Part shown: positions 1,396 through 22,942 of the stretch, piece by piece
How positions within the stretch are numbered: the stretch's first letter is position 1
How the letters are laid out: every line of letters starts with the position of its first letter
Source of the DNA: Macrostomum lignano
Taxonomy: Eukaryota
Length of the DNA: 26,142 nucleotides
Direction: 5' to 3'
Assembly: GCA_002269645.1 (NCBI GenBank)
Contig: NIVC01005108.1
Location: 1-26,142 of the forward strand
Program-made: the position numbers and the translations under genes
Notes under the pieces: generated by a model
The model's input: only the letters and a program-made list of their open reading frames with translations
The model's database searches: none
What the model was told of the DNA's origin: nothing

Positions 1396-1457
1396 ATGTC
1401 GCGAGACAGACTGCCGGACCTGAGGCGGGCGATGGCTTTGGGGAGGATGCTGCTCAG
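1396..1457 (+). CDS. STX1: Syntaxin exon 1 (N-peptide)
   Basis: ATG 1396, [16 protein letters not shown] (compare the syntaxin N-peptide MRDRLPDL/MKDRTQEL); donor CAG|GTGAGA at 1458. Confidence 0.8.
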
Positions 1458-4400
1458 GTGAGAACTGCATCTGATTGACCAGTGCGACTGCTCGACAGTG
1501 GACTGTCTGACAATGGGACTGTCTGACAATGGGACTGTCTGACAATGGAACTGTCTGATAGTGGGACTGTCTGACAATGGGACTGTCTGACAATGGACTA
1601 TCTGACAATGGGACTGTCTGATAGTGGACTGTCTGACTATGGACTATCTGACAATTCTGACAATGAGACTATCTGACAATGGGACTATCTGACAATGGGA
1701 CTATCTGACAATGGGACTGTCTGACAATGGGACTATCTGACAATGGGACTATCTGACAATAGGACTATCTGACAATGGGACTGTCTGACAATGGGACTAT
1801 ATGACAATGGGACTATCTGACAATGGGACTATCTGACAATGGGACTATCTGACAATGGACTATCTGACAATGGGACTATCTGACAATGGGACTATCTGAC
1901 AATGGGACTATCTGACAATGGGACTATCTGACAATGGGACTATCTGACAATGGGACTATCTGACAATGGGACTGTCTGACAATGGGACTGTCTGACAGTG
2001 GACTGTCTGACAATGGGACTACTGACAATGGGACTGACAATGGGACTGTCTGACAGTGGGACTGTCTGACAATGGGACTCTGCGCCCGCAAATTCGCGCT
2101 AAGATCGTGCCAGACGAAGAAGAGCTCGGCGACGAGAACTTTTCGATGGAACCGGACGATCAGCCGGGCAGGCGCGGAGACCCAGCGTTGGCAGCGGCCG
2201 CGCAACTCCGAAGGCTTCATGGACGATTTTTTCGCTGACGTCGACGCTGTCCGTCGCCTGATTAACGAAATCGAAGCTAGCGTCTGCAGCGTCAGGATGA
2301 AGCACTCGCACATCCTGGCCTCGCCAAACAACGACCAGAGTGAGTTTCTGCGGAGTGAAATCACTCTCTAGACTCTTGACTGATCGGAGTGAACTCACTC
2401 TGGCACACCATGACTGATCTCAGTGAACTCACCCACCCTTGAGCAGGCAGTTTCTGCTTCAAATCTTCATTATTCAGGACCCAAATCCATTTGTTGCAGA
2501 AACAAAGGAAGAACTTGAAGTCCTGATGCAGAACATCAAGACCAACGCTAACAAAGTGCGAATGAAGCTCAAAGGTTCGTGCTACTGTTTATTGGGATCA
2601 TTATCCCCTCAGAGCTCATTGGGATCATTATCCCCCCGCCACTCATTAGGATCATTATCCCCCCACCAGATTTCATTGGGATCATTAACCCCCACCAGAG
2701 ATCATTGGGATCATTAAACCCCACCAGAGATCATTGGGATCATTATCCCCCACCAGAGATCATTGGGATCATTATCCCCCACCAGATTTCATTGGTGATC
2801 ATTAACCCCCCGGAGTTCATTGGGATCATTATCCCCCCAGAGTTCATTGGGATCATTATCCCCCAGAGTTCATTGGGATCATTATCCCCCACCAGAGATC
2901 ATTGGGATCATTATCCCCACCAGATTTCATTGGTGATCATTAACCCCCGGAGTTCATTGGGATCATTATCACATTCATTAACAGCTGACAGTCAGGTCAC
3001 ATAGCAACCGACTCCCATCGAATCTCCAGCCGTTGAGCAGGGTCTTGAGCAGAGTGAGCTGTCCGACGTGGATCCACAGCCGACGTGCGAATCCGCAAAA
3101 CCCAGGTAAATTTCTGCTTTTACTGTTGCAGATTCTGACAGAAAAACAGGAAAGAAATTAATCGGCTTTCCCGCTCAGTCCAACACAAGAGCCTCTTAAA
3201 AATTTTTGCATAAATTATTTTGCTAAAATCTCCGAAATACCAGAAAGTTTTAAAGCATTATTGCTTTGCAGCACTCGACAATCACGCGAAAGTTCATAGA
3301 GACAATGAGCGAGTACAACAGGGCCCAGTTGGAGTACCGCAGCGGCTGCAAGGCTCGGATTAGACGCCAGATGGAGATCAGTAATCCGAGGCTTAGTTCG
3401 ATTTTGGCTAGACTCCTGTGCTGACTGTGGCGCTGGTGAAGGCAAAATATTTACCAGATATTAGTTGCACGCTGGCCCCTATTGGTGCGATCGTTTTGGC
3501 GGGTTAATTTTAATGAATCTTCTCTCTCTGTGCACACTTGATTGCGACTCAGTGGCTGCCGGTTCTTATCTCTCTGTACACACTTGATTGGACTCAGTGG
3601 CTGCGGTTCTTATCTCTCTGTACACACTTGATTGGACTCAGTGGCTGCCGGTTCTTATCTCTCTGTACACACTTGATTGGACTCAGTGGCTGCCGGTTCT
3701 TATCTCTCTGTACACACTTGATTGGACTCAGTGGCTGCCGGTTCTTATCTCTCTGTACACACTTGATTGAACTCTTATGGCTGCCGGTTCTTATCTCTCT
3801 GTACACACTTGATTGAACTCTATGGCTGCCGGTTCTTATCTCTCTGTACACACTTGATTGAACTCTATGGCTGCCGGTTCTTATCTCTCTGTACACACTT
3901 GATTGAACTCTATGGCTGCCGGTTCTTATCTCTCTGTACACACTTGATTGACTCTATGGCTGCCGGTTCTTATCTCTCTGTACACACTTGATTGGACTCA
4001 GTGGCTGCCGGTTCTTATCTCTCTGTACACACTTGATTGAACTCTATGGCTGCCGGTTCTTATCTCTCTGTGCACACTTGCACACTTGCACACTTGAACT
4101 CTATGGCTGCCGGTTCTTATCTCTCTGTACACACTTGATTGGACTCAGTGGCTGCCGGTTCTTATCTCTCTGTACACACTTGATTGAACTCTATGGCTGC
4201 GGTTCTTATCTCTCTGTGCACACTTGCACACTTGCACACTTGAACTCTATGGCTGCCGGTTCTTATCTCTCTGTACACACTTGATTGGACTCTATGGCTG
4301 CCGGTTCTTATCTCTCTGTACACACTTGATTGGACTCTATGGCTGCCGGTTCTTATCTCTCTGTACACACTTGATCTCGCGTATCCGCGTACCTCCCATA

Positions 4401-7400
4401 TTTTACTCCGAAACACAATATTATTTAGAAAGTGTCTATTGATAAAAATAATTTTAGTAGCCTTGTGTTCACCCGAATCTCAGTCTGGCTCAATAACAGG
4501 TATAAAAACTGGCTTCTGTTTTTGGGGAGTGCTAGATGTCTGGGGATCCACTGGGGCGCTGAGCTGCAGAAGAGCGTCATAAAAAGCTTGCAGCAGGCAC
4601 CAGGCTGAACTGAATGCCTGCGTGCCAAACTGCTGAAGCCTCAATTTGATTGACTGCACTATTCGATGTGGCCGCTTGTTGAGTGACGCCCCACTTCGCT
4701 TCCAGTGACTTGTCGTTGCATTATTAATTTGCACGTCAGCCGATTGCAGAAAAATCCAATCAAAAGTGTCAGTTGAAAGTGAAATTTTAAATCATTTTCA
4801 GCAGCTGCTCAGATATCTTAGAGACCTAACTCGTTCCCCACCTCTCTCTCAGACCTCTCTCCAGGTCTCCCTCCCTCCGATTTCTGCGTCAGATCTCTCT
4901 GCATCAGATCTCTCATAAGATCTCTCATCAGATCTCTCATCAGATCTCTCATCAGATCTCTCATCAAATCTCTCATCAGAATCTCTCATGAGATCTCTCA
5001 TCAGATCTCTCATCAAATCTCTCATCAGATCTCTCATCAGATCTCTCATCAGATCTCTCATCAGATCTCTCATCAAATCTCTCATCAGATCTCTCATGAG
5101 ATCTCTCTCATCAAATCTCTCATCAGATCTCTCATCAGATCTCTCATCAGATCTCTCATCAGATCTCTCATCAGATCTCTCATGAGATCTCTCTCATCAA
5201 ATCTCTCATCAAATCTCTCATCAGATCTCTCATCAGATCTCTCATCAGATCTCTCATCAGATCTCTCATCAGATCTCTCATGAGATCTTTCATCAGCTCT
5301 CTCAGATCCTCGCAGAGGATACCTACTGACATGCAGAGCTTCTCTAGTGAAGCCGTCAGTCAGAGCAGCGCGGCCCGCACCCACCGCAATTCCAGCACCT
5401 GACGCTTTCCCGCAAATTTGTGGACGCCATCAGCCGCTACAACGCCTGCCAGATCGCCTTCAGGCAGGGCTGCAAGGCGAAGATTTCTCGCCATTTAGCG
5501 CTCAGTAAGAAAGCTGCTCTGCGAGCTCGTGGCTTTGAGCTTGAGAAGCATTCAGGCTTGTGCCCGCTCGAATCTTGATTGTTTGTTGCATTGCACGGTG
5601 CTTTGTTATTTTTATGCCTTGTTGTGGCTTTGGGCAGCACATTCTGTTGTTAACAGGCGCCCGCCCAGCCATTTGTCAACAATACTGAGTGCTCGCGAAC
5701 TACAGAGCTTGAAAAAAATTTGAGAATTGACTTCTGCTGCTAGAAGAAATCTTTATGGCTATTTCCGCTGCTTGAGGACCGTTCTTCTGGTATAAAAGAA
5801 AATGTTTCCGCTCGTCTGTCTTTTTTCTGCTTCGAACTTGCTATATCCTATATACTAAAAATGAGTTGTCTGTGGGTATGCGATAGATTTCAGAAAAAAT
5901 GGCTCAACCGATTTTCTTCAAACTTGCACCATTCGATCAGAAATTCTCCTGGGACGGTACATGCATCTTGGCTAAGAAATTGCTATATATTAAAGGATTA
6001 AATATTCGAAAAACATGCTTTTTTGCAAAGGTCAAGCAAAATTTTCGACTTGAAATGCATTGTAAGAATGCTAGAGAAAAAACTGACTGGCTGAATTTCA
6101 ATTCTGATAAAGATTGCATCACAACAAGTAGAAAACAGTGCCGAAGAAATGCACACACGACTTGATTTAAATTGCGTAACCAATATTGCTAACTTGAATT
6201 GAAACTGATACTGGCTGACTGAGAAATTGATTTTGTCATAACTTTTTACTCTAATTGACTTGCTGTAAGAATTGAATTATAAGGGCCACAATTGATGTAC
6301 TCCAATTGAAAGAGATAGCCCAGATGCGAACAGACTGGAATGCTAATGTAGCGACCTGGGTTCGAATCTTAGTAGTGCAAAATAATTTTTTTATTAAAAC
6401 ACCTTGAAAACATGAAACTGCTAAACATAAAAGAAGCACAATGTCAAACATATCAGTGGCACCATGTCGAACATTAAAGAGCCACCATGCCAAACATAAA
6501 CGAGCCACCATGTCAAGCATTAAAAAGCCACCATGTCAAACATATTTGTGACTCCATGTAAAACATATATACGTGACTCCATGTCAAACATAAAAGAGCC
6601 ACCATGTCAAACGTAAAAGAACCGACATGTTGAACATTAAAGAGCCACCATGTCAAACGTAAAAGAACCACCATGTCGAACTTTAAAGAGCCACCATGTC
6701 AAACGTAAAAGAACCGACATGTCGAACATTAAAGAGCCACCATGTCAAACATTAAAGAGCCACCATGTCAAAATTAAAGAGCCACTTTGTCATACTTAAA
6801 AGAGCCACCATGTCAAACATTAAAGAGCTACCATGTCAAACATAAAAAAGCCACCATGTCAAACTTTAAAGAGCCACCACGTCGAACGTGAAAAAGCCAC
6901 CATGTCAAGCATAAAAGAGCCACCATGTCTAACAATAAAGAACCACTTTTTCGAACATTAAACAGCCACCATGTCAAATGTAAAAGAACCGACATGTCGA
7001 ACATTAAAGAGCCACGATGTCAAACATTAAAGAGCCACCATGTCAAAAATTAAAGAGCCACTTTGTCATACTTAAAAGAGCCACCATGTCGAACATTAAA
7101 GAGCTACCATGTCAAACATAAAAAAGCCACCATGTCAAACTTTAAAGAGCCACCACTTCGAACGTGAAAAAGCCACCATGTCAAACATAAAAGAGCCACC
7201 ATGTCTAACAATAAAGAACCACCATGTCGAACATTAAAGAGCTACCATGTCAAGCATAAAAGAGCCGACATGTCGAAAATTAAAGAGCTACCATGTCAAA
7301 CATTAACGAGCCACCATGTCAAACATTAAAGAGCCACTTTGTCGAAAATTAAAGAGCTACCATGTCAAACATAAAAGAGCCAACATGTCGAAAATTAAAG

Positions 7401-10400
7401 AGCCACCATGTCAAACGTAAAAGAACCACCATGTCGAACATTTAAGAGCTACAATGTCAAACATTTAAGAGCCACCATGTCAAACGTAAAAGAACCACCA
7501 TGTCGAACATTTAAGAGCTACAATGTCAAACATTAAAGAGCCACCATGTCAAACATTAAAGAGCCACCATGTCAAACATAAAGGAGCCACTTTTTCGAAC
7601 ATTAAAGAGCCACCACGTTGAACATTAAAGAGCCACCATGTCGAACATTAAAGAACCACCATGTCAAACATTAAAGAGCCACCATGTCAAATAATAAAGA
7701 GCCACCATGTCAAACATTTAAGAGCCACCATGAAAAAAATTTAAAGAGCCACCATGTCTAACATTAAAGAGCCACCATGTCCAACATGCAACATTAAAGA
7801 GCCACCATGTCCAACATATATGTGACTCCATGTCGAACATTAAAGAGCCACCATGTCGAACGTTAAAGAGCCACCATGTCGAACATAAAAGAGCCACCAT
7901 GTAAAACATTAAAGAGCCACCATGTCTAACATTAAAGAGCCACCATGTCGAACGTTAAAGAGCCACCATGTCAAACATTAACGAGTCACCATGTCAAGCG
8001 TATACGTGACTCCATGTCAAACATTAAAGAGCCATCATTTCAGACATTAAAGTGTCACCATGTCGAACATTAAAAAGCCACCATGTCCAACATTAAAGAG
8101 CCACCATGTCTAACATATATGTGACTCCAAGTCGAACATTAAAGAGCCACCATGTCCAACATGCAACATTAAAGAGCCACCATGTCCAACATATATGTGA
8201 CTCCATGTCGAACATTAAAGAGCCACCATGTCGAACGTTAAAGAGCCACCATGTCGAACATAAAAGAGCCACCATGTAAAACATTAAAGAGCCACCATGT
8301 CTAACATTAAAGAGCCACCATGTCGAACGTTAAAGAGCCACCATGTCAAACATTAACGAGTCACCATGTCAAGCGTATACGTGACTCCATGTCAAACATT
8401 AAAGAGCCATCATTTCAGACATTAAAGTGTCACCATGTTGAACGTTAAAGAGCCACCATGTCGAACATTAAAGAGCCACCATGTAAAGCATATATGTGAC
8501 TCCATGCCAAATATATACATGACTCCATGTCTAACACATACATGACTCCATGTCAAACATTAAAGAGCCACCCTGTCGAACGTTAAAGAGCCACAATGTA
8601 GAACATTAAAGAGCCACCATGTCGAACGTTAAAGAGCCACCATGTCGAACATTAAAGAGCCACTTTGTCAAACATAGAAGAGCCACCATGTCAAACATAG
8701 AAGAGCCACCATGTCAGACATTGGAAGCCACCGTATCAAACATAAAAGAGTTACCATGTTGAACAAAAAAGAGCCACAATGTAGAACATAAAAGAGCCAC
8801 CCTGTTAAACATAAAATATACACAATTTCAAATGTAAAAGTAAGTGAATTTTAAAGGAGCCGCTATAATGCTAAAGAAATTGTCGCACTAGCTACTTATT
8901 GTCTGGTGGATGCTTGCTATTTGGGGATGCTATCTATCTTGGGATGCTTGCTATCTGGGGGATGCTTGCTATCTGGGGATGCTTGCTATCTGGGGGATGC
9001 TTGCTATCTGGGGGATGCTTGCTATCTGGGGGATGCTTGCTATCTGGGGGATGCTTGCTATCTGGGGGATGCTTGCTATCTGGGGGATGCTTGCTATCTG
9101 GGGGATGCTTGCTATCTGGGGGATGCTTACTATCTGGGGGATGCTTGCTGTCTTGCGATGATTTCTTTTTGCATTGCACTTCATTTGAGTATTTTGTCTG
9201 TTTTCTTTGTGAAGGCTTTATTTCGCTATTTTTTGTTACTTACTTGTAGAGAACAGAGACTCTATATAGATGTCCCCAACGGGGGGCAAAGATTGCTAGT
9301 CCTATATACTAAAAATGAGTTGTCTGTATGTATGTATGTATATGGGTATGCGATTGATTTCAGAAAAAACGGCTCAACCGATTTTCTTCAAACTTGCATC
9401 ATTCGATCAGAAATTTTCCTGGCACAGTACATGCATCTTGGCTAAGAAATTGCTCAATGTTAAAGGGATTAAATATTCGAAAAACACGCTTTTTTGCAAA
9501 GGTCAAGCAAAATTTTCGACTTGAAATGCATTGTAAGAATGCTAGAGAAAAAACTGACTGACTGAATTTCAATTCTGATAAAGATTGCATCACAACAAGT
9601 TGAAAACAGTGCCGAAGAAATGCACACACGACTTGATTGAAATTGCGTAACCATATTGCTAACTCGAAGTGAGACTGATACTGGCTGACTGAGAAATTGA
9701 TTATGTCATAACTTTTTACTCCAATTGACTTGCTGTAAGAATTGAATTATAAGGGCCACAATTCATGTTCTCCAATTGAAAAGAGATAGCCCTGATGCGA
9801 ACAGACTGGAATGCTAATGTAGCGACCTGGGTTCGAGTCTTAGAAGCGCAAAATAATTTTTTTATTAAAACACCTTAAAAACTAAAAAACTGCTAAACAT
9901 AAAAAAAGCGCAATAGAAGAGCCACCATGTCAAACCTAAAGGAGCCACCATGTCGAACATTAAAGAACCACCATGTCGAACATAAAAGAGCCACCATATC
10001 GAACATAAAAGAGTTACCATGTTAAAAATTAAAGAGCCACCATGTCGAACATAGAAGAGCCACCATGTCGAACATAGAAGAGCCACCATGTCAAACATTA
10101 AAGAGCCACCATATCAAACATAAAAGAGTTACCATGTCAAACATTAAAGAGCCACATTGTCAAGCATTAAAGACCCACCATTTCAAACCTAAAATAGTTA
10201 CCATGTCAAACATTCAATAGCCACCATGTCAAACATTAAAGAGCCACCATGTCGAACATAAAAGAGCCACCATATTAAACATAAAAGAGTTACCATGTCA
10301 AACATTAAAGAGCCACCATGTCGAACATTAAAGAGCCACCATGTCAAACATTAAAGAGCCACATTGTCAAGCATTAAAGACCCACCATTTCAAACCTAAA

Positions 10401-13400
10401 AGAGCCACCATGTCAAACATTAAAGAGCCACCATGTCGAACATTAAAGAGCCACCTTGTCAAATATTAAAGAGCCACCATTTCAAACCTAAAGAAGCCAC
10501 CATGTCGAACATACAAGAGCCACCATGTCGAACATAGAAAAGCCACCATGTCAAACATTAAAGAGTCACCATGTCAAACATTAAAGAGCCACCGTTTCAA
10601 ACCTAAAAGAGCCACCATGTTAAAAATTAAAGAGCCACCATGTCAAACATAAAACAGACACCATTAAGAACATTAAAGAGCCACCATGTCAAATATAAAA
10701 CAGCCACCATTTCGAAAATTAAGGAGCCACCATTTCAAAAATTTAAGAGCCGCTATGTTAAACATTAAAGGGCCACCTTGTCAAATATTAAAGAGCCACC
10801 ATTTCAAACCTAAAAGAGCGACCCTGTCGAACATACAAGAGCCACCATGTCGAACATAAAAGAGCCACCATGTCGAACATACAAGAGCCACCATGTCGAA
10901 CATAGAAAAGCCACCATGTCGAACATAGAAAAGCCACCATGTTAAACATTAAAGAGCCAATATTTCAAACCTAAAGGAGCCACCATGTCGAACATAAAAG
11001 AGTCACCATGTTAAAAATTAAAGAGCCACCATGTCGAACATTAAAGAGCCACCATTTCAAACATTAAAGAGCCACCATGTCAAACATTAAAGAGCCACCG
11101 GTTCAAACCTAAAAGAGCCACCATGTCGAACATTAAAGAGCCACCATGTCAAACATAAAACAGACACCATGTCAAACATTAAAGAGCCACCATGTCAAAC
11201 ATTAAAGAGCCACCGGTTCAAACCTAAAAGAGCCACCATGTCGAACATTAAAAAGCCACCATGTCAAACATTAAAGAGCCACATTGTCAAACATTAAAAA
11301 GCCACCATTTCAAACCTAAAAGAGCCACCATGTCAAACATTAAAGAGCCACCATGTCAAACATTAAAGAGCCACCTTGTCAAATATTAAAGAGCCACCAT
11401 TTCAAACCTAAAGAAGCCACCATGTCGAACATACAAGAGCCACCATGTCGAACATTAAAGAGCCACCATATCAAACATAAAAGAGTTACCATGTCAAACA
11501 TTAAAGAGCCACCATGTCAAACATTAAAGAGCCACCATGTCGAACATAAAAGAGCCACCATATCAAACATAAAAGAGTTACCATGTCAAACATTAAAGAG
11601 CCACCATGTCGAACATTAAAGAGCCACCATGTCAAACATTAAAGAGCCACCTTGTCAAATATTAAAGAGCCACCATGTCGAACATAAAAGAGCCACCATA
11701 TCAAACATAAAAGAGTTACCATGTCAAACATTAAAGAGCCACATTGTCAAGCATTAAAGACCCACCATTTCAAACCTAAAATAGTTACCATGTCAAACAT
11801 TCAATAGCCACCATGTCAAACATTAAAGAGCCACCATGTCGAACATAAAAGAGCCACCATATTAAACATAAAAGAGTTACCATGTCAAACATTAAAGAGC
11901 CACCATGTCGAACATTAAAGAGCCACCATGTCAAACATTAAAGAGCCACATTGTCAAGCATTAAAGACCCACCATTTCAAACCTAAAAGAGCCACCATGT
12001 CAAACATTAAAGAGCCACCATGTCGAACATTAAAGAGCCACCTTGTCAAATATTAAAGAGCCACCATTTCAAACCTAAAGAAGCCACCATGTCGAACATA
12101 CAAGAGCCACCATGTCGAACATAGAAAAGCCACCATGTCAAACATTAAAGAGTCACCATGTCAAACATTAAAGAGCCACCGTTTCAAACCTAAAAGAGCC
12201 ACCATGTTAAAAATTAAAGAGCCACCATGTCAAACATAAAACAGACACCATTAAGAACATTAAAGAGCCACCATGTCAAATATAAAACAGCCACCATTTC
12301 GAAAATTAAGGAGCCACCATTTCAAAAATTTAAGAGCCGCTATGTTAAACATTAAAGGGCCACCTTGTCAAATATTAAAGAGCCACCATTTCAAACCTAA
12401 AAGAGCGACCCTGTCGAACATACAAGAGCCACCATGTCGAACATAAAAGAGCCACCATGTCGAACATACAAGAGCCACCATGTCGAACATAGAAAAGCCA
12501 CCATGTCGAACATAGAAAAGCCACCATGTTAAACATTAAAGAGCCAATATTTCAAACCTAAAGGAGCCACCATGTCGAACATAAAAGAGTCACCATGTTA
12601 AAAATTAAAGAGCCACCATGTCGAACATTAAAGAGCCACCATTTCAAACATTAAAGAGCCACCATGTCAAACATTAAAGAGCCACCGGTTCAAACCTAAA
12701 AGAGCCACCATGTCGAACATTAAAGAGCCACCATGTCAAACATAAAACAGACACCATGTCAAACATTAAAGAGCCACCATGTCAAACATTAAAGAGCCAC
12801 CGGTTCAAACCTAAAAGAGCCACCATGTCGAACATTAAAAAGCCACCATGTCAAACATTAAAGAGCCACATTGTCAAACATTAAAAAGCCACCATTTCAA
12901 ACCTAAAAGAGCCACCATGTCAAACATTAAAGAGCCACCATGTCAAACATTAAAGAGCCACCTTGTCAAATATTAAAGAGCCACCATTTCAAACCTAAAG
13001 AAGCCACCATGTCGAACATACAAGAGCCACTATGTCGAACATTAAAGAGCCACCATATCAAACATAAAAGAGTTACCATGTCAAACATTAAAGAGCCACC
13101 ATGTCAAACATTAAAGAGCCACCATGTCGAACATAAAAGAGCCACCATATCAAACATAAAAGAGTTACCATGTCAAACATTAAAGAGCCACCATGTCGAA
13201 CATTAAAGAGCCACCATGTCAAACATTAAAGAGCCACCTTGTCAAATATTAAAGAGCCACCATTTCAAACCTAAAAGAGCCACCATGTCGAACATTAAAG
13301 AGCCACCTTGTCAAATATTAAAGAGCCACCATTTCAAACCTAAAGAAGCCACCATGTCGAACATACAAGAGCCACCATGTCGAACATAAAAGAGCCACCA

Positions 13401-16400
13401 TATCAAACATAAAAGAGCCACCATGTCGAACATAAAAGAGCAACCATGTCAAACATAAAACAGACACCATTAAGAACATTAAAGAGCCACCATGTCGAAC
13501 ATTAAAGAGCCACCATGTCAAATATAAAACAGCCACCATTTCGAAAATTTAAGAGCCGCCATGTTAAACATTAAAGGGCCACCTTGTCAAATATTAAAGA
13601 GCCACCATTTCAAACCTAAAAGAGCGACCCTGTCGAACATACAAGAGCCACAATGTCGAACATAAAAGAGCAGCTATGTAGAACATAAAAGAGCCACCAT
13701 GTCAAACATAAAAAAGCCACCATGTCAAACATAAAAGAGCCAACATGAAGAACATTAAAGAGCCACCATGTCGACCATTAAAAGAGCCACCATGTCGAAC
13801 ATACAAGAGCCACCATGTCGAACATAGAAAAGCCACCATGTCGAACATAGAAAAGCCACCATGTTAAACATTAAAGAGCCAATATTTCAAACCTTAAGGA
13901 GCCACCATGTCGAACATAAAAGAGTCACCATGTTAAAAATTAAAGAGCCACCATGTCGAACATTAAAGAGCCACCATGTCGAACATTAAAGAGCCACCAT
14001 GTCAAACATAAAACAGACACCATGTCAAACATTAAAGAGCCACCGGTTCAAACCTAAAAGAGCCACCATGTCGAACATTAAAGAGCCACCTTGTCAAATA
14101 TTAAAGAGCCACCATTTCAAACCTAAAGGAGCCACCATGTCGAACATTAAAAAGCCACCATGTCGAACATTAAAAAGCCAACATGTCAAACATAAAAGAG
14201 CCACCATGTCAAACCTAAAAAAGCCACCATGTCAAACATAGAAGAGCCACCATGTCAAACATAATAGAGCCACCATGTCAAACATTAAAGAGCCACCATG
14301 TCAAACATAGAAGAGCCACTATGTCAAACATAAAAGAGCCACCATGTCGAACATAAAAGAGTCACCATGTTAAAAATTAAAGAGCCACCATGTCGAACAT
14401 TAAAGAGCCACCATGTCGAACATTAAAGAGCCACCATGTCGAACATTAAAGAGCCACCATATCAAACATAAAAGAGTTACCATGTCAAACATTAAAGAGC
14501 CACCATGTCGAACATTAAAGAGCCACCATATCAAACATAAAACAGACACCATGTCAAACATTAAAGAGCCACCATGTCGAACATTAAAGAGCCACCATGT
14601 CAAACATAAAACAGCCACCATTTCGAAAATTAAGGAGCCACCATTTCGAAAATTAAAGAGCCGCCATGTTAACCATTAAAGGGCCACCATGTCAAACATT
14701 AAAGAGCCACCATGTCGAACATAAAAGAGCCACCATGTCGAACATTAAAGAGCCACCATGTCAAACATTAAAGAGCCACCGGTTCAAACCTAAAAGAGCC
14801 ACCATGTCGAACATTAAAAAGCCACCGTGTCGAACATAAAAAAGTCAACATGTCAAACATAAAAGAGCCACCATGTCAAACCTAAAAAAGCCACCATGTC
14901 AAACATAGAAGAGCCACCATGTCGAACATAAAAGAGCCACTATGTCAAACATAAAAGAGCCACCATGTCAAACATTCAAGATATCCAATTTCAAATGTAA
15001 AGGTATAAAGCGCCATGCCAATTTAAAGGAGCCACTATAAAGCTAAGGAAATTGTCGCTCTAGCTACTTATTGTCTGGTGGATGGTTGCTATTTGGGGAT
15101 GCTATCTATCTTGGGGATGCTTGCTATTTGGAGGATGCTTGCTTTCTGGGGGATGCTTGCTATCTGGGGAATGCTTGCTATCTGGGGAATGCTTGCTATC
15201 TGGGGGATGCTTGCTATCTGGGGGATGTTTGCTATCTGGGGGATGCTTGCTATCTGGTGGATGCTTGCTATCTGAGGGATGCTTGCTATCTGAGTGATGC
15301 TTGCTATCTGGGGGATGCTTGCTATCTGGGGTATGCTTGCTATCTGAGGGATGCTTGCTATCTTGGGGTATGCTTGCTATCTGAGGGATGCTTGCTATCT
15401 TGGGGATGCTTGCTATCTGGGGGATGCTTGCTATCTGCGGAATGCTTGCTATCTGGGGAATGCTTGCTATCTGGGGGATGTTTGCTATCTGGGGGATGCT
15501 TGCTATCTGGGGGATGCTTGCTATCTGGGGGATGCTTGCTATCTGGAGGATGCTTGCTATCTTGGGGATGCTTGCTATCTGGGAAATGCTTGCTATCTGG
15601 GAGAATGCTTGCTATCTGGAGGATGCTTGCTATCTGGGGGATGCTTGTGGTCTTGGGAAGATTTCTTATTGCAATTCACTTCATTTGAGCAGTTTGTCTG
15701 TTGTCTTTGTGAAGGATTTTTTGGCTGTCTTTTTGTTAATTGTAGAGAACAGAGATTCTATCCAGATGTCCCCCATCGGGGGGCGAAGATTGCTAGTTTG
15801 TAAACTATTATTAGAGCGCTTCTGCAAATTAAAGCAAAAAATGTTCAATATTCATTGACTCTTACTTAAAGTAGATTAAAGAACGCTTCATATTTTTCCA
15901 TTTTAGCCGGTCGGCAAACAACCGATGCTGAACTGGAAGAAATGATTGAATCCGGCAACCCCGCCATCTTCACCCAGGGAGTAAGTTGCACTTTGGCCTC
16001 TAGGATGGTTGCTGGTAAGAGAGCAGCCAGGTATACCAGCTAGGGATGTTAGCAGCTAGGGGATGTACCAGCTAGGAAATACCAGCAGTAAGTGTACTGA
16101 GAACATTTACATGTAGAACGGATGTAACATCTAGGATGGATTCCAACAAAGACGGATACCAGATTGAATTTGACGAATCAGGGGGTTGCCAACCAGAAAG
16201 GCACCAAACAGAAAGTCACCAACAAGAAGTCACCAACTAGAAAGTCACCAACCAGAAAGTCGCCAACCAGAAAGTCGCCAACCAGAAGGTTATCAACCAG
16301 AAAGTTACTAACTAGAAAGTCGCCAACCAGAAAGTCACCAACCAGAAAGTCACCAACCAGAAAGTCACCAACCAGAAGGTTATCAACCAGAAAGTCACCA

Positions 16401-17108
16401 ACCAGAAAGTCGCCAACCAGAAGGTTATCATGCAACCAGAAAGTCACCAACCAGAAAGTCACCAACCAGAAAGTCGCCAACCAGAAAGTCGCCAACCAGA
16501 AAGTTACTAAACAGGTTACCAACTTACCAGAATGCTTTCAACTAGGCCAACAATAAACCAGGTTATCAAATAGAAAGTTACCAACGAAGGTTACAAACCG
16601 ACCATAAGACTGTTTTTTATTTTGCAGATCATGACCGACACTCAGCAGGCCAAGCAGTCCTTGGCAGACATTGAGGCCCGACACGAGGATATCATAAAAC
16701 TGGAAAAGAGCATCAAAGAGCTGCACGACATGTTTCTAGACATGGCCATGCTTGTAGAGAGCCAGGTATGAGGTTTATTTGAATTTTATTCGATCTGCTT
16801 TAAAAATTCAACGACCTCTTATGGATGCCAGGGTGAAATGGTTGATCGGATCGAGAACAACGTGCAGCAGGCTGTTGACTATGTCGAGGCTGCCAAGAGA
16901 GACACTAAAAAGGCCGTCAAATATCAGAGCAAGGCTCGAAAGGTGATTGAGCTGAAAACTTCTGCATGGTGGGCATGTGCATTCACCAGTTATTATACGT
17001 GCATTTATCAACCCCCGATTGCAGAAAAAGATCATTCTACTGGTCTGCCTGTTGGTCGTGCTTATCTGCATTGTAGGCGGCATCATTGGCGGTGTGGTCC
17101 CGAAATGA
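1396..17108 (+). CDS. STX1: Syntaxin-1-like plasma-membrane t-SNARE, 9 coding exons plus an alternative exon 5: 1396-1457, 2104-2339, 2500-2574, 3030-3105, (3272-3380 or 5396-5504), 15907-15980, 16628-16765, 16832-16942, 17025-17108
   Basis: N-peptide MSRDRLPDL; Habc FMDDFF...KHSHILASP...ANKVRMKLK...ADVRIRKTQ; linker [25 protein letters not shown]; SNARE motif [44 protein letters not shown]; C-terminal TM helix. All introns are GT-AG. Exon sizes 75/109/74/138/111 nt match my recollection of vertebrate STX1 exon structure. One clear frameshift at ~3070 and a probable compensating pair at ~1441 and ~2202. Confidence 0.93.
1494..2079. repeat. 16-bp minisatellite (GGGACTRTCTGACAAT)n, ~36 units, syntaxin intron 1
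   Basis: Directly visible tandem array occupying ~585 of the 646-nt intron. Confidence 0.97.
2104..2339 (+). CDS. STX1: Syntaxin exon 2 (linker and Ha helix)
   Basis: Acceptor CTAAG| at 2102-2103; encodes [45 protein letters not shown]; donor GTGAGT at 2340. The 5' boundary is less certain than the 3'. Confidence 0.85.
2500..2574 (+). CDS. STX1: Syntaxin exon 3 (Hb helix)
   Basis: TTGCAG| acceptor; (K)[24 protein letters not shown]; donor GT at 2575. Confidence 0.92.
2591..2970. repeat. Variable-length (~21-30 bp) minisatellite with core CATTGGGATCATTATCCCC, syntaxin intron 3
   Basis: Visible tandem array; each unit contains the inverted repeat GGGAT-CATT-ATCCC. Confidence 0.95.
3030..3105 (+). 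CDS. STX1: Syntaxin exon 4 (Hb-Hc loop), 1-bp deletion as assembled
   Basis: [14 protein letters not shown] in one frame, then ADVRIRKTQ in another; adding one G to GG at 3070-3071 gives [20 protein letters not shown]| acceptor, GTAAAT donor at 3106. Confidence 0.88.
3272..3380 (+). CDS. STX1: Syntaxin exon 5a (Hc helix), 109 nt
   Basis: TTGCAG|[36 protein letters not shown](T)|GTAATC; phase 0 in, phase 1 out. Confidence 0.93.
3521..4375. repeat. 45-bp minisatellite (CTCTCTGTACACACTTGATTGGACTCAGTGGCTGCCGGTTCTTAT)n, ~19 units
   Basis: Visible array; overlapping ORFs repeat every 15 aa. Two variant types (GGACTCAGTGG and GAACTCTATGG). Confidence 0.97.
4890..5308. repeat. 12-bp minisatellite (AGATCTCTCATC)n, ~35 units
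   Basis: Visible array; overlapping ORFs repeat every 4 aa (MRDL/SLIR). Confidence 0.97.
5396..5504 (+). CDS. STX1: Syntaxin exon 5b, duplicated Hc-helix exon, putatively mutually exclusive with 5a, 109 nt
   Basis: TTCCAG|[36 protein letters not shown](T)|GTAAGA. Same length and phases as 5a, 16/36 identical residues, no stop or indel. Confidence 0.85.
6309..6392 (+). other. Degenerate tRNA-derived (SINE-head-like) module within Helitron copy 1
   Basis: A-box-like TAGCCCAGATGC (6316), B-box GGTTCGAATC (6359-6368), tRNA-like spacing, T-arm CTGGG/CTTAG, T7 run at 6386-6392. The acceptor stem does not pair. Confidence 0.55.
6421..8835. repeat. 23-bp satellite (GAGCCACCATGTCRAACATTAAA)n, ~100 units, inside Helitron copy 1
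   Basis: Visible array; includes a CATATATGTGACTCCATG variant and internal block duplications. Confidence 0.97.
8902..9149. repeat. 18-bp satellite (GGGGGATGCTTGCTATCT)n, ~14 units, inside Helitron copy 1
   Basis: Visible array; overlapping ORFs repeat every 6 aa. Confidence 0.97.
9780..9863 (+). other. Degenerate tRNA-derived module within Helitron copy 2
   Basis: TAGCCCTGATGC (9787), GGTTCGAGTC (9830-9839), T7 run 9857-9863; homologous to 6309-6392. Confidence 0.55.
9893..15002. repeat. 23-bp satellite, ~220 units, inside Helitron copy 2, with a 1587-bp higher-order duplication
   Basis: Visible array; diagnostic variants recur at a 1587-bp offset (10151/11738, 10655/12242, ORFs 11353/12940). 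Confidence 0.97.
15074..15647. repeat. 18-bp satellite, ~32 units, inside Helitron copy 2
   Basis: Same unit as 8902-9149, longer and more diverged. Confidence 0.97.
15907..15980 (+). CDS. STX1: Syntaxin exon 6 (linker)
   Basis: TTTTAG|(T)[24 protein letters not shown]|GTAAGT; 74 nt; accepts phase 1 from 5a or 5b. Confidence 0.95.
16034..16600. repeat. Degenerate ACCAGCTAGGGATGT-like repeats (16034-~16090) and a 15-bp minisatellite (ACCAGAAAGTCACCA)n (16186-16600), syntaxin intron 6
   Basis: Visible arrays; overlapping ORFs repeat every 5 aa (KSPTR/LVGDF). Confidence 0.93.
16628..16765 (+). CDS. STX1: Syntaxin exon 7 (SNARE motif, N-half)
   Basis: TTGCAG|[46 protein letters not shown]|GTATGA; includes the zero-layer Gln. 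Confidence 0.97.
16832..16942 (+). CDS. STX1: Syntaxin exon 8 (SNARE motif, C-half)
   Basis: GCCAG|[37 protein letters not shown]|GTGATT. Confidence 0.97.
17025..17108 (+). CDS. STX1: Syntaxin exon 9 (tail-anchor TM helix)
   Basis: TTGCAG|[30 protein letters not shown] at 17106-17108. Confidence 0.95.
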
Positions 17109-17220
17109 CGGCTCTTAAAACTGACAAAGATAATTTTTAAACGAACGGTTTTATTCTTCTACCCTTACTCGGAATTTGCATGGATATCAAAACTTTCGTA
17201 TGATCTCAACCGCATGTGGA

Positions 17221-17226
17221 AATAAA
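17221..17226 (+). promoter_or_regulatory. Candidate polyadenylation signal of the syntaxin gene
   Basis: First AATAAA after the stop, 113 nt downstream; further AATAAA hexamers follow, so usage is unknown. Confidence 0.35.
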
Positions 17227-19114
17227 TTTACACAACACCAAAAACATTTTAGCGAACTCAACTATGAAATTAAAATGTACTTGCGTGTAAAAATACCTGT
17301 ATCAAAGGTGACATTTTGACTAAAAAAATAAATTGGCAAAACAAAACAAATTATATATTTAAGGGTAAAAAACAGGCCGCAGGTACTCGCAGTGCGATTT
17401 CAGAACGACAGAATCAAGAGAAGATAATCGACGAAGCGCTAATTATGCACATGCCTTACCTGCATGATTCCAGCAGCATCAACACCGTGACTTCTTTGGA
17501 ACTGAAGCGAGTGAGCGCTAATGCACGTAATTACAAAACAAAATAAACGTTTACACTAGCTGTTTTCCTATGATTCCTATTTTTTCAGTTAAAATACGAA
17601 TTCTATGCTTTTCTGTCATGTTTTTCATCTGTCGGCTGATCTAATAGCTTAAATTTAACTTGATATCGGTGTAAACCTTAGCCTAAATTCGAGACGGCCA
17701 ATTTGGCATTGTTATGTAAGCAACTACAAGTCATGGCGAAGAAGCCCTTTTTAACGACATTGCATATTTTACGAAAATAAAAACTATAAATTTCATAAGC
17801 CGCTTAATTATAAAGCTATGGTTTTGACGTTATCAGCTTTTTTAATTATAAGGATTATATGTTTTGTTTTAGCTAGTCCTGCGAAAAGGATTGAACGCAA
17901 ATTTCAAATTATTTTCTGCATTTTCGATCGGACGCTTAATTAAATTTAGCGCTATTAATTAAATCTAGCTGAGCGGGTTAACCAGGACTCCATGAGTTTA
18001 GAAATGCGCGATTTCTTTGATTTGCTTTACTTATCGTTATCTGCGAGTAACTGTAAACTTTGACATACAAAACTTACTTACTTGTACTATTTATTATATT
18101 TTGACGCTTGATATTATAATATCCTACAAAGATTAGTACTATCCTAATGGTATTGTATTATATTAACTTATAAAAAAGATAAACAACATTGGAGTCTTAA
18201 TACTGATATTGTGCATAACATATTCAAACTACCAACATCTAGTAGCTACACATTGCAGCTTTTGTTTATGCCATTAAATCACCATGAGCTGAAAATGTTG
18301 TAGTCTGCAGTTTGATATCATACAATACTTTAATACAAATAATAAAGCTGTTTTGTTTTGTAGTTATTATTAGTAACATTTATAAAGCAGTTTTATTAAA
18401 AATCTAATTCTATGCAAACAAAATGAAATGCAAGCTTCTGATAATGATATATTCTAGTAATATTAATTACAATTATTATTTCTTTTTAAGTAACTTTTAG
18501 GTTTTTTATAACTTTTGGTTTCCTTTCTTATATTCTTGGTCTTATATTTAAAAGCTCAATGAGGGTTTAGACTTAAAATGAAATTTTTTCACAATCATTT
18601 CTATCTTTAAAAAACCTAGAAAAGTATTTTTAGGCCTTTTTGGTTGAAACTTTTTAGGAAAGTTTCTTATTTTTATTTTTCTATAAAATTATAAAACATA
18701 TTGATATAATTTTAAAAATCCAATATTAGTATAGTAGTATATACCACTCTGACCATTAATTGAAATATGGCACGAAGAACTTTTACAGCTAAAACAAGTA
18801 GACAGTAAAACAAAAACTGAAATTTATTCAATGTTTTTTTGTCAATATGACCAACAATAAAGCTATCTAGACACTTGTGAGCCTACAGTGTATAGTTAAA
18901 AATGATTTCAATTCTGGAAGAGATTTCCTCTACAACTAAGATATGGCAAAGGTAGCTAAATGTGAAAATAGTTTAAGCTGGTTGACTGTGGTTGGTTAAG
19001 TTGAAAATGGTTAAGCATGCATTATAACTAATAGTTTGAGTTGAAATTTTTCGTAAGTACTTGTGTTTAGCCAATTAATTTTACTGTATCATAGAAAGTA
19101 AATCTGGTTTGCAG

Positions 19115-19511
19115 AATCGCCGGCACAGCAGTATTCGCTGCCACTCTGCCAAGCGCCATGGCCACCGTCGGCATAGAAGCCGCAGCTTCCAACGGGGCAA
19201 TGGCCGCCAAGTGGTGCGCTCGCGGTCTCCTGATAGCTGCGGCATTGACGCTGCCGCATGGAACTCGCAGCGGATCCGCTCCTACTCGCCGCTATCATCG
19301 CCGTTGCCTAGCAACCAAGTAGACTATTATGACGCTGCAAATCTGCATCGGTTTAGCCAGTTGGGAGACAATCAAAGTATGCGAGGCTGCGATGTCTTGG
19401 CGGAAAATTCATTACCTGGCGGGCACGATCGCAGCAGATATCACCCATGTACGATTTGCTTCTTTTGTGAATTTACGCCTGTCTGTCTGTCTGTCTGTCT
19501 GTCTGTCTTAG

Positions 19512-19553
<42 letters not shown>

Positions 19554-20275
19554 ACTGACTGACTGACTGGCTGACTGACTGACTGACTGACTGATTTTGT
19601 CTGAAAAGTGTCATTATCAAAAAATGTCTTCAATGCTTGGATTCTTTTATGCGTGTTAGACACGTTATCGTTATAGATTTTCGTTAGAAACTTGAGATAA
19701 TTTTTACCGACACCCCATCATCATGACGGCTAGATCCGCCTCCGCCAAGGCCTACGACCTGGGCAGAGGGCCGCAACGAATAACAATGGGTGGAAGAAGG
19801 AGAAGGCCAAGAAGAATTTGATGATGAAGAAGACAGCGAGGATGATGATGAAATTGAGGACTCAACAACGAAAGTCCAGCCCGACTGGCGCCGCTTTTAC
19901 AGCCCGCCAAAGCCCGAATTTGTTTACAAGTCGCTGATGCGTCGCAATCGGCCTAATCGAATTGAATCGGCGGCGTCTTCGTCGACTTTGCTGACTTCTT
20001 CGGCAGCGGCGGCGCCGCCAGATTCAAAATCGACAGCGAAAGCCACGCCGCCTTCCGATAGAGCGACCTTTCTGGCTAGGAGGCTGGGAATTCAGCCGAC
20101 GCCGCCGCAGCCAACGACGGGATGCTTCTGCCGGGGACGCCGGCCGCAGATGGCGGATGCAGCCACTCAGACGAGTCTGCCGTGCTGTCCGGGACGCTGC
20201 TGCCCGTCGTTGCGAAGGCCAACCTCATATGGCAAGAAGGACGTCCTGCAAGGTCGGCTGGAATTTGAAGAATGA
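19115..20275 (+). CDS. Putative two-exon (or partial) gene for an unidentified low-complexity protein: exons 19115-19448 and 19734-20275, internal TAA at 19781
   Basis: GC-rich islands in AT-rich DNA. TTGCAG| at 19114, GT at 19449 and TAG| at 19733 join in frame to give ...HRRHRSRS...SRYHPYPPPPRPTTWAEGRNE*QWVEEGEGQEEFDDEEDSEDDDE... Start codon not identified; no family recognised. Confidence 0.35.
19479..19594. repeat. Compound microsatellite (GTCT)n then (GACT)n, in the predicted 19449-19733 intron
   Basis: Directly visible. Confidence 0.95.
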
Positions 20276-20678
20276 TTTGGAATATAAGAAGCAATCGAGA
20301 CTTCCGTTGCTTGTTTTACTTTTCATAGCAATTTTGATAGGCCTCCACATATTCCTAACAAAACTCAGAATTCCGGCGTTTTCAGCCATCCTGCATCAGT
20401 TTTAGCATCTACCATTCATAATTAAATAAAACTTCGTCCTAATCAGTGCAATTTTTCAACTGTTTGTGTAAAACTGCGTTTTCATTCGTTAGAAACTATT
20501 GAAGATGAAATCAAGACAATATTTAATTTACGAGCTGTTTTATTGAAAGAATACTTTTACGCATAGTTAGTTTCATCAGTTTTCGGAAAATCGTTAGGCC
20601 AAAGTTCATATGCCAGAGTTATACAATTGCAGCTCTGAAAACTTCACCCGATTTTGTCAGTAGAATTTTAGCAGACTT

Positions 20679-22942
20679 TTACCAAAACGAGCACTTTTCA
20701 CTCGGGTTCATCGTCTGCCGGACTCCGCACTGGAAGACTTGGGCAAATCCTTTGCTATTCTCCATCATTCCGCGAACGCGCAGATGCGGCGGGCTGTGCT
20801 TGATGTTCTTGAAGCGCCGCTTTAGAGCCGCTGGCTCGGCCTTCGTGCACCAGGCCTGCGCCGCTTGAACGAAGAACAGTCGCTCGGGCGTCAGTTCAGA
20901 TGGCAGGTTCGGCAGCTGCAGCCGGCGACCAGTCTCGCCCTGTAATTGCATGGCACAGCGATGTCATTGCCCAGAGTCGTATTGGAGCCGTGCGGTACGC
21001 CGGGCACCAGCTCATAGGAGCCGTATCGAGAACGCACGCATTCGACCCGGCGCAGGTACTCCTCGGTGGTCCGGTTGTCCCAGTGGTTACCGTGGATTCC
21101 CTCCTTGTTGAGCTGGCGGCCTTTGATGTCGAATGCGTGACCGATTTCATGACCAACGACCAATCCCAGGCCGCCCAGGTTCATGTAGTCAGGATAGTCC
21201 CTATGGTACATCGGAGGCGACAGTATTCCCATGGGAAACACGATCTCGTTGCGCCGCATGTAGTTGTACGCATTAGTTGTAAGGCCACTTAAAGTGAGAA
21301 AGGCTGTGGTAGCCGAGCTGTTTTCCGTCGATAGCACGCCGAACTTCTTTCGTGCCGATGCCCAGAGCGCAATGGAGAACAACCTGCCAAAGTCCTTATC
21401 CACTGAGACTTTCGAATATCGGCCTTTTCGAAAGGAATTAATAGCAGGCGAATAGTACGCAGAAAGTTGGTCGGCTGACAAGACCTCAAACCCTATTGTG
21501 TGCTTGAGCGACAGAAGCTTTTCAATAATGATATCTTTCGTATCCGACTCTATCCAGTCCTGATTAAGCACGCTGTTAACTGTTGCATTCTCCAGGAGGT
21601 CGATCAAATTCTGCACATGCTCAAAGTTCTCTGCATGGTAGGCCTTCTGATACATTCGCTCAACTACTGGAGACAGCAAGTCTTTAGTGCGCTTCATGCA
21701 TGCATCTACCGGTCTCCCCACTGCTTTATCCATCACATCTTCTCTCAGTGGGGACTCAGTCCACATGCGCTCTAAACGCATGGGTAGGAACCTCGCAAAA
21801 CTTAGCAGCCAGTCAACAACAAGAAAGCTTTGGTAAATGGAGAGCTTTCTACTGGCTGAATATGTTGATTTCTTTTTGAAGTACGTCACAAAGTTTATTA
21901 CTCGCTTTGGATTCTCCAGCTCCACCAAGGCATCCGGGTCGTAGTCAGACTGAACCAGCTCGTCAAAGAATAGGCTCCACGAAAATGGATCAGCTGGGTT
22001 TGCACATTGACTAAGCGCATCTAGATCACGGATCTTGTGCTGCTGTTGCTTGGCAAGCTTGCTGCAGCCATCCGACCAATTAGCGTATCGTTCGGACTGC
22101 TGGATCTGTTTTAGAACTCGACTGAAACTGAAACTCTCGTTAGCGATGGTCAGAACAGTCGCTCCGCCAATAGAACTGAAAAATGTTAATATGGGCTCGA
22201 AATTGGACATTGAGCGGTAGAGCTTTGTACTTGCTGAAATAACCACTCTGCTAGCCTTTCTTAGCTTATTGCTGTCGCCTCGCTTCAGCTCTCGAATGTA
22301 TGATGAGGACACGCGGACATCAAACATAGTATGGACATCCGTATTCACAATGCGGGCTAAGATTGATTCGATTGTCCGATTAGACCGTCTTGGACTGACG
22401 GCTTCAACAAGATGCTTGAGAAGGCTAGAGAAGAAATGCTGAGCCGCAACTGTGTCATTTTTCATGGATCTATAGCGCATCCATTTGGTGCAACTGCGAA
22501 AAAGCATCCTTGTAAGGTTGTACAAGTCTCTAACTTTCGGATCCGTGCTGTTGACTACCCAGTCCAGCATCAGCACTTCGAACAGATTGCTGCGTAGTTG
22601 ATTTCGCATCACAGAGTAGGAGTTCTGGTAGAAGGTCGGGCCAGTTAGCTTTAATGACTTGAAAACCTCATCGGGGTCGTATTTGTAGTTCACTGGAAAG
22701 TTGCCGCATGCGTAGTTGTAAAAGTCAACGCATGGATTTGCGCTGAAATTCATCTTGCTAGAAACAGCGGCAGAGAGTGCAACACAGGCTGACGCTTGGC
22801 ATACGCTTGTTGCTGGTTAATCATTGCGTGATTGCTCTCGACAGAGCGGCAGCTGAGAACTGCTGTTAGCCTCTTCTGTCACAGACTGATCCGTCGATGG
22901 CACCGCGGAGACAACCGCTAGAAACGCGAATAAAGCGAGCAT
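20679..22942 (-). pseudogene. Intronless M13 (neprilysin/ECE-like) metallopeptidase gene, disrupted as assembled
   Basis: Signal-peptide-like MLALFAFLAVVSA (ATG 22942); CxxxxCV and NPCVDFYNYACG; NAYNY...NEIVFPMGIL; GHEIGHAFD (HExxH at 21151-21137); AQAWC, HSP..LRV, terminal CSFW* (TAA 20681-20679). In-frame TAA at 22819-22817 and a frameshift with missing sequence at ~20956. The family call is secure; pseudogene versus assembly error is not. Confidence 0.8.

Follow-up and report, generated by a model that had tools for sequence, protein, structure and literature searches.

Two tandem, frame-locked alternative exons of a Macrostomum lignano syntaxin-1 gene and their probable ancient origin

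Contig NIVC01005108.1 of the flatworm Macrostomum lignano (GenBank assembly GCA_002269645.1), whose 26,142 nucleotides are here called the window, carries a syntaxin-1 gene in which two neighbouring exons, 5a and 5b, encode alternative versions of the same 36-residue block. The results of the present study make it highly probable that these exons are an ancient mutually exclusive pair, which was inherited from before the platyhelminth, annelid, brachiopod, nemertean and mollusc lineages split. An earlier note, made from the sequence of the window without database searches, had proposed that a syntaxin-1 gene here has two homologous alternative exons, arranged in tandem and frame-locked, and this proposal was supported. 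The exons of the gene, with their positions in the window, are:

1396-1457, forward strand: putative exon 1 (N-peptide), 62 nt from the ATG to a GTGAG donor, phase 2 as assembled
2104-2339, forward strand: putative exon 2 (acidic linker and Ha helix, ending ...SPNNDQ)
2500-2574, forward strand: exon 3
3030-3105, forward strand: exon 4 (end of Hb to start of Hc), with a 1-nt frameshift adjoining 3068
3272-3380, forward strand: exon 5a, an alternative exon assigned to the spiralian type A, 109 nt by direct reading and by script
5396-5504, forward strand: exon 5b, assigned to the spiralian type B alternative exon (canonical-like by descent), 109 nt, with a Macrostomum-specific ending
15907-15980, forward strand: exon 6 (linker), carrying a TGA at 15929-15931 that is read on double inclusion
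16628-16765, forward strand: exon 7 (start of the SNARE motif)
16832-16942, forward strand: exon 8 (C-terminal part of the SNARE motif)
17025-17108, forward strand: exon 9 (transmembrane anchor and TGA stop)

The predicted product of this gene contained the Pfam domains PF00804 (Syntaxin, Habc; 8.8e-34) and PF05739 (SNARE; 2.8e-19), followed by a hydrophobic tail, so that the Habc domain, the SNARE motif and the C-terminal transmembrane anchor of a syntaxin-1 were all present. Its best matches in the PDB were chains of rat Stx1A (E about 1e-91). The closest database proteins came from M. lignano. One of these, P0001, was identical to the 5a isoform at 191 of 196 residues when the frameshift in exon 4 was allowed for, and P0125 and P0126, from two other syntaxin-1 genes of M. 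lignano, had about 60% identity to the query, which was the 5b isoform. By these matches, the gene is a Macrostomum syntaxin-1 paralogue.

Exons 5a and 5b each had AG at the upstream and GT at the downstream splice site, and both were of phase 0 at their start and phase 1 at their end, being translated as 36 codons plus one base. They were identical at 16 of 36 residues and at 64 of 109 nucleotides. The length, phases, splice sites and residue identity agreed with those of the earlier note, and were confirmed by direct reading and by script. Since 109 is not divisible by three, exactly one copy needs to be spliced in. A script confirmed what had been predicted for the two other outcomes: joint inclusion of 5a and 5b led to the TGA at 15929-15931 in exon 6, with three exon junctions downstream of that stop, and skipping of both shifted the frame and led to an early stop that also lies ahead of these junctions. 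In a tblastn search of the window with rat Stx1A (which served as a probe only), both exons matched the same Stx1A residues, with E = 3e-12 for 5a and E = 2e-9 for 5b, values which argue against a chance match. No third copy of exon 5 was detected in the window by this search. Alignment to rat Stx1A also bore out the claim that the cysteine equivalent to rat C145 is kept in both exons. The pair therefore combines homologous neighbours of equal length and phases, intact splice sites, and loss of the frame on joint inclusion or skipping; transcripts with one exon or the other were seen in relatives, as isoform pairs in Lineus and Octopus and as full-length coding sequences of a single type on contigs of about 1 kb.

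A full-length protein search revealed two sharply distinct versions of the 36-residue block among spiralians, here called type A and type B, with the endings ...RQMEI and ...RQLEI, respectively. Type A was characterized by I4, I9, (K/R)A at 17-18 and M34, and type B by L4, V9, AC at 17-18 and L34. Exon 5a had I4, I9, RA and M34, and exon 5b had L4, V9, AC and L34. At position 1, exon 5a encoded H instead of Y, like a sequence from Hirudo. The mean identity of 5a was 24.2/36 to type A exons vs 20.0/36 to type B exons, and that of 5b was 20.7/36 to type B vs 14.8/36 to type A. A neighbour-joining tree set all first-position exons together with 5a apart from the remaining ones; this split had the support of 337 of 500 bootstraps, a reasonable level for 36 sites. 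These comparisons point to 5a as the spiralian-specific type A and to 5b as a descendant of type B that has strongly diverged in Macrostomum, 5b being the most divergent type B sequence seen. By descent, type A appears to be the derived spiralian copy, and type B the one that stayed near the single exon which other animals have; the single exon of non-spiralians was closer to type B (28.0/36) than to type A (23.4/36). The description of 5a as the canonical and 5b as the divergent exon was thus reversed by identity and by the tree as far as descent is concerned, yet 5b is the more derived of the two in Macrostomum.

The genomic loci examined were the window, two further M. lignano loci (Mlig016078, locus L001, in assembly GCA_002269645.1, and Mlig011532, locus L002), and one locus each of the annelid Dimorphilus gyrociliatus (L003), the nematomorph Gordionus (L004) and the brachiopod Lingula anatina (L005). 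In the window, Mlig016078, Dimorphilus and Lingula, type A lay upstream and type B downstream between the exon ending ...RIRKTQ and the exon encoding (T/A)GR...ESGNP. The exon length of 109 nt was measured in the first three of these. In Mlig016078, 5a' (19146-19254) was followed by an intact, unannotated 5b' (20998-21106), and in Dimorphilus an annotated type A exon (3999-4107) was followed by an intact, unannotated type B exon (4846-4954); all four were 109 nt long with AG/GT. In Lingula, type A was found at 20462-20569 and type B at 20845-20952. At this last locus, exons 3-4 and the A/B pair each occurred twice (13768-20040 and 20462-22903), which looks like a duplication, either introduced by the assembly or recent and local.

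For the nemertean Lineus longissimus and for Octopus vulgaris the evidence consisted of protein isoforms. The RefSeq isoforms X2 and X5 of Lineus differed solely at residues 123-156, and the same was true of the RefSeq isoforms P0133 and P0155 of Octopus. Moreover, many Logan/JGI contigs of about 1-1.5 kb encoded full-length proteins of a single type, either A or B. Wherever the gene was inspected, its coding sequence was spread over several kb in nine or more exons, so that these contigs must be spliced mRNAs and both types must be expressed in spiralians. In Gordionus, an ecdysozoan, the counterparts of exons 4 and 6 flanked a single exon.

The recurrence of the same order in Mlig016078, the annelid and the brachiopod, together with the isoform pairs of the nemertean and the octopus, contradicts the suggestion that the pair arose by a lineage-specific duplication. 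That suggestion had been drawn from the sequence G-C-K in both exons, which does not bear it out, type A being ancestrally D-G-C-K and 5b' of the paralogue Mlig016078 being E-R-C-K. As 5b' still has E-R-C-K, the G in 5b of the window is an independent change. Gene conversion between the two exons was also considered as the origin of the common G-C-K, and was unsupported, as the run shared by them, GGCTGCAAGGC, was only 11 nt long and is unremarkable at 59% identity.

The same layout bears on whether 5b belongs to this gene at all. The intron in which it lies is filled with satellite sequences and so is prone to assembly errors, by which an exon of another paralogue could have been placed there. 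This explanation is scarcely credible, as type A followed by type B within one intron interval was found at three other loci or species (Mlig016078, Dimorphilus and Lingula) in independent assemblies, and no further syntaxin exons accompanied 5b in the window. Mis-assembly, which the earlier note had named as a result that would overturn its proposal, is thereby countered.

Comparison of the window with its M. lignano paralogues allowed the selection acting on 5b to be estimated. At the nucleotide level only exons 5a, 5b, 7 and 8 could be aligned between the window and Mlig016078 or Mlig011532; the exon 5 alignments ended within about 6 bases of the exon boundaries, and the introns were unalignable. 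Exon 5b and 5b' of Mlig016078 were identical at 25 of 36 amino acids, with a proportion of synonymous differences (pS) of 0.64, which is near saturation, a proportion of nonsynonymous differences (pN) of 0.16, and a ratio of nonsynonymous to synonymous substitution rates (dN/dS) of about 0.13. For 5a and 5a', the corresponding identity was also 25/36 and dN/dS was about 0.12. Exon 5b is thus under purifying selection, with a dN/dS equal to that of 5a, and this comparison refuted neutral decay since the split of the paralogues. The derived ending KAKI(S/A)RHLAL was common to 5b and 5b', and this indicates that selection has acted on the new sequence.

These values also bear on whether 5b is a relic, i.e. 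a pseudo-exon left from a functional ancestral pair that is no longer spliced, with 5a being constitutive. Such a state would agree with the use of type A by all annotated flatworm proteins recovered, with the lack of any type B exon in Mlig011532, with the position of 5b as the most divergent type B sequence, and with the lack of a 5b-containing protein in the database. It is nevertheless improbable, since 5b has kept an open frame, a length of exactly 109 nt and its AG/GT sites, since the flanking introns have become unalignable whereas dN/dS between 5b and 5b' is about 0.13, and since both paralogues share the derived RHLAL ending.

The absence of type B from Mlig011532 appeared to be complete: in the 4.1-kb intron of this locus, no degenerate type B remnant was detected by tblastn (E up to 100) or blastn (word size 7). 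In place of type B, this intron (7580-11676) contained a repeat whose period was about 94 bp. In P0002 (UniProt), the M. lignano gene model that corresponds to Mlig016078, a 5a-like block preceded an incomplete 5b-like block, 5a' having been misjoined to a portion of 5b'.

Damage to the reading frame, which had escaped the earlier note, was found upstream of exon 5. In exon 4 of the window, one G was missing adjoining 3068 (gac g[g]t gga), where P0001 reads ELSDGGSTADV. Exon 1 was of phase 2 through its only donor, and intron 1 was of phase 0 in both M. lignano paralogues (Mlig016078 and Mlig011532), for which reason an indel is suspected in exon 1. Exon 2 showed a frame switch, the acidic frame homologous to the paralogues being different from the frame that encodes FMDDFF. 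The coding sequence of the window copy was therefore interrupted by the exon 4 frameshift and by phase conflicts in exons 1 and 2, and from exon 5a to exon 9, over about 700 nt, it was wholly open.

According to one explanation of this damage, the whole gene copy in the window is a decaying duplicate in a duplicated genome, and the exon pair is intact only because inactivation was recent. The one-base deletion relative to P0001, the phase difference of exon 1 from the paralogues, the frame switch within exon 2 and the five amino acid differences from P0001 over 196 residues are all in line with it. An error of long-read assembly is a plausible alternative, because the exon 4 deletion lies within a short G run, as the exon 1 event possibly does as well, and because many one-base length differences occurred among the intronic tandem repeats; these observations fit an assembly error equally well. 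With exons 5a-9 wholly open, we regard a decaying duplicate as unlikely, although less so than a relic 5b. It would concern this copy only and would leave the nature of the exon pair unchanged.

Several observations weigh against the reading of the pair as an ancient and functional switch. Exon 4 of the assembled copy is frameshifted, as exons 1-2 probably are, so that the window copy could be a pseudogene. Mlig011532 has kept the first exon only, and its loss of type B indicates that this exon is dispensable. Either/or use of the exons in Macrostomum is deduced here from the genome, and a correctly spliced 5b isoform of Macrostomum was not found in a collection of 5.8 billion proteins searched with queries of 118 and 323 amino acids, the misjoined P0002 being the only match of this kind. 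The absence from this collection seems to say little, as its Macrostomum entries appear to be derived from genome annotation only. The comparison outside spiralians included one genome, that of Gordionus, and the difference in function between A and B is predicted from residue positions.

An ancient exon pair, as preferred here, raises the question of how a single copy is chosen. Simple steric exclusion is ruled out by the length of the intron between 5a and 5b, which is 2 kb. Within 3100-6400 of the window, a search for inverted repeats gave no credible docking/selector RNA pairing, all matches being internal to satellites or attributable to chance, and comparison of the window with Mlig016078 gave no intronic conservation that would mark regulatory elements. 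Nonsense-mediated decay would probably eliminate transcripts that include both exons or neither and in this way impose the either/or choice, and the choice of 5a or 5b would then yield one form of syntaxin-1 or the other.

In the Munc18-1 complex, the linker region that follows Hc has been described as residues 157-189 (PMC10895456), which places the end of Hc at about residue 156. Exon 5 corresponded to H120-I155 of rat Stx1A in an alignment of 239 residues. The beginning of Hc, which we take to be at about residue 111, was encoded in exon 4, and the exon (120-155) thus covers about the C-terminal three quarters of the helix (about 111-156). It was therefore an overstatement that the whole Hc helix is swapped.

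In rat numbering, the positions at which A and B differed consistently were 120, 121, 123, 128, 136/137, 143/144, 147, 150 and 153. E166 of the linker helix is reported to form bridges to R142 and K146, and L165 to contact K146 and residue 150 (PMC10895456). By helical periodicity, residues 142, 146, 150 and 153 would share one face of the helix, so that the differences at 150 (Q/K) and 153 (L/M) would lie on the face to which the linker docks, with 143/144 and 147 beside it. The exon also encodes R151 and I155, which form the site bound by the MUN domain of Munc13-1 (PMC8728020). R151 was kept everywhere, and in Macrostomum type B the changes I155 to L, Q152 to H and E154 to A were found. The A and B forms might therefore be expected to differ in the stability of the closed state and in the ease with which Munc13 opens it, and exon choice most likely gives two syntaxin-1 isoforms with different closed/open behaviour. 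The suggestion that the closed/open state is tuned through Hc and the start of the linker is in this respect a reasonable functional idea, and is kept here as a prediction.

A wider role may be considered, although we hold it to be possible rather than probable. The A/B switch may be an undescribed regulator of syntaxin-1 opening that has operated for more than half a billion years in Lophotrochozoa, altering the Hc face to which the linker docks and, in Macrostomum, the Munc13 site at R151/I155. A single spiralian gene with cell-type-specific exon choice might then provide the functional range that vertebrates obtain from STX1A, 1B, 2 and 3.

SNARE genes with mutually exclusive exon pairs are already known, and the pair in the window was inherited and is no lineage-specific invention. 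In vertebrates, exons 5a and 5b of SNAP-25 are a tandem, equal-length, mutually exclusive pair in a neuronal SNARE, which alters a regulatory surface. The SNAP-25 pair differs in that it belongs to another SNARE protein and to the vertebrate lineage, and covers the last part of the first SNARE motif together with the palmitoylated linker. In unc-64 of C. elegans and in mammalian syntaxin, the use of alternative C-terminal exons is under the control of CELF/UNC-75 (PMC4946901). Like the pair in the window, these involve the choice of an alternative exon in a syntaxin-1 orthologue, but the unc-64 and mammalian events swap the C-terminal membrane anchor and not Hc and the linker.

An alternative last SNARE-motif exon and transmembrane exon were also observed in spiralian syntaxin-1 genes (Lineus P0129-P0140 and P0171; Dimorphilus 6725-6763 vs 8271-8351). 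In the window, the 2.4 kb that follow exon 8 contained a single transmembrane exon.

The closest parallels are the isoforms X2/X5 of Lineus and P0133/P0155 of Octopus, in which the same 36-residue block is swapped with the same A and B signatures. Their type B is near canonical (...GRIQRQLEI), whereas 5b of the window is strongly derived (...AKISRHLAL) and 5a of the window starts with H and not with Y. The window protein could be aligned with rat syntaxin-1A in complex with Munc18-1 (PDB 3C98 and 4JEH), in which the block has a single, type B-like form. The crystal structure of the Habc domain of squid s-syntaxin (PDB 1S94) carries the type A block, and a structure of type A Hc thus exists, although it is from a cephalopod and its entry in the sequence search was not marked as one of two splice forms. 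No structure of a spiralian type B was found. In the literature, our coverage of which was incomplete, no published description of an alternative exon in the Hc region of syntaxin or of its phylogenetic depth was found. The remark in the earlier note that no Hc-exon switch is known therefore holds for papers, but the RefSeq isoforms of Lineus and Octopus already differ by exactly this exon.

In at least five phyla, two versions have been kept of that part of syntaxin-1 which holds the closed conformation (the R142/K146/150 face and the Munc13 site R151/I155). The A/B pair offers natural, physiologically validated variants with which the effect of contacts between Hc and the linker on the closed/open balance and on Munc13 dependence can be tested. 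Conservation throughout lophotrochozoans is the more interesting by-product of this study, and should be of moderate interest to specialists on SNARE proteins. The type B exon was absent from the model of M. lignano P0126, from Mlig016078g1 and from the Dimorphilus model DgyrCDS9419, and was misjoined in P0002. As type B was missed or misjoined in several models, spiralian syntaxin-1 annotations need to be checked for it.

The introns on either side of exon 5b were occupied largely by tandem repeats:

3518-4375: minisatellite with a 45-bp period, in the intron between 5a and 5b
4896-5304: tandem array with a 12-bp period, just upstream of 5b
6423-14981: satellite of 8.5 kb with a 23-bp period, which takes up most of the intron separating 5b from exon 6 (10.4 kb)

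The unit of the 23-bp satellite, AAACATTAAAGAGCCACCATGTC, was present in about 370 copies and had a strong skew of A over T. An 18-bp array (TCTGGGGGATGCTTGCTA) was found inside this satellite at 8902-9153, and again just downstream of it at 15074-15647. Further minisatellites were located at 1500-2079, 2587-2970 and 16189-16504. Introns 1, 3, 5a-5b, 5b-6 and 6 thus each contained at least one minisatellite, with periods of 16, 29, 45, 12, 23, 18 and 15 bp, which is an unusually high density.

A neighbouring gene was found on the minus strand at 20891-22753. Its open reading frame of 620 amino acids matched Peptidase_M13_N and the first half of Peptidase_M13 (neprilysin/ECE family), with the zinc motif HEIGHAFD; the 3' part of this gene must be located in a further exon or frame.

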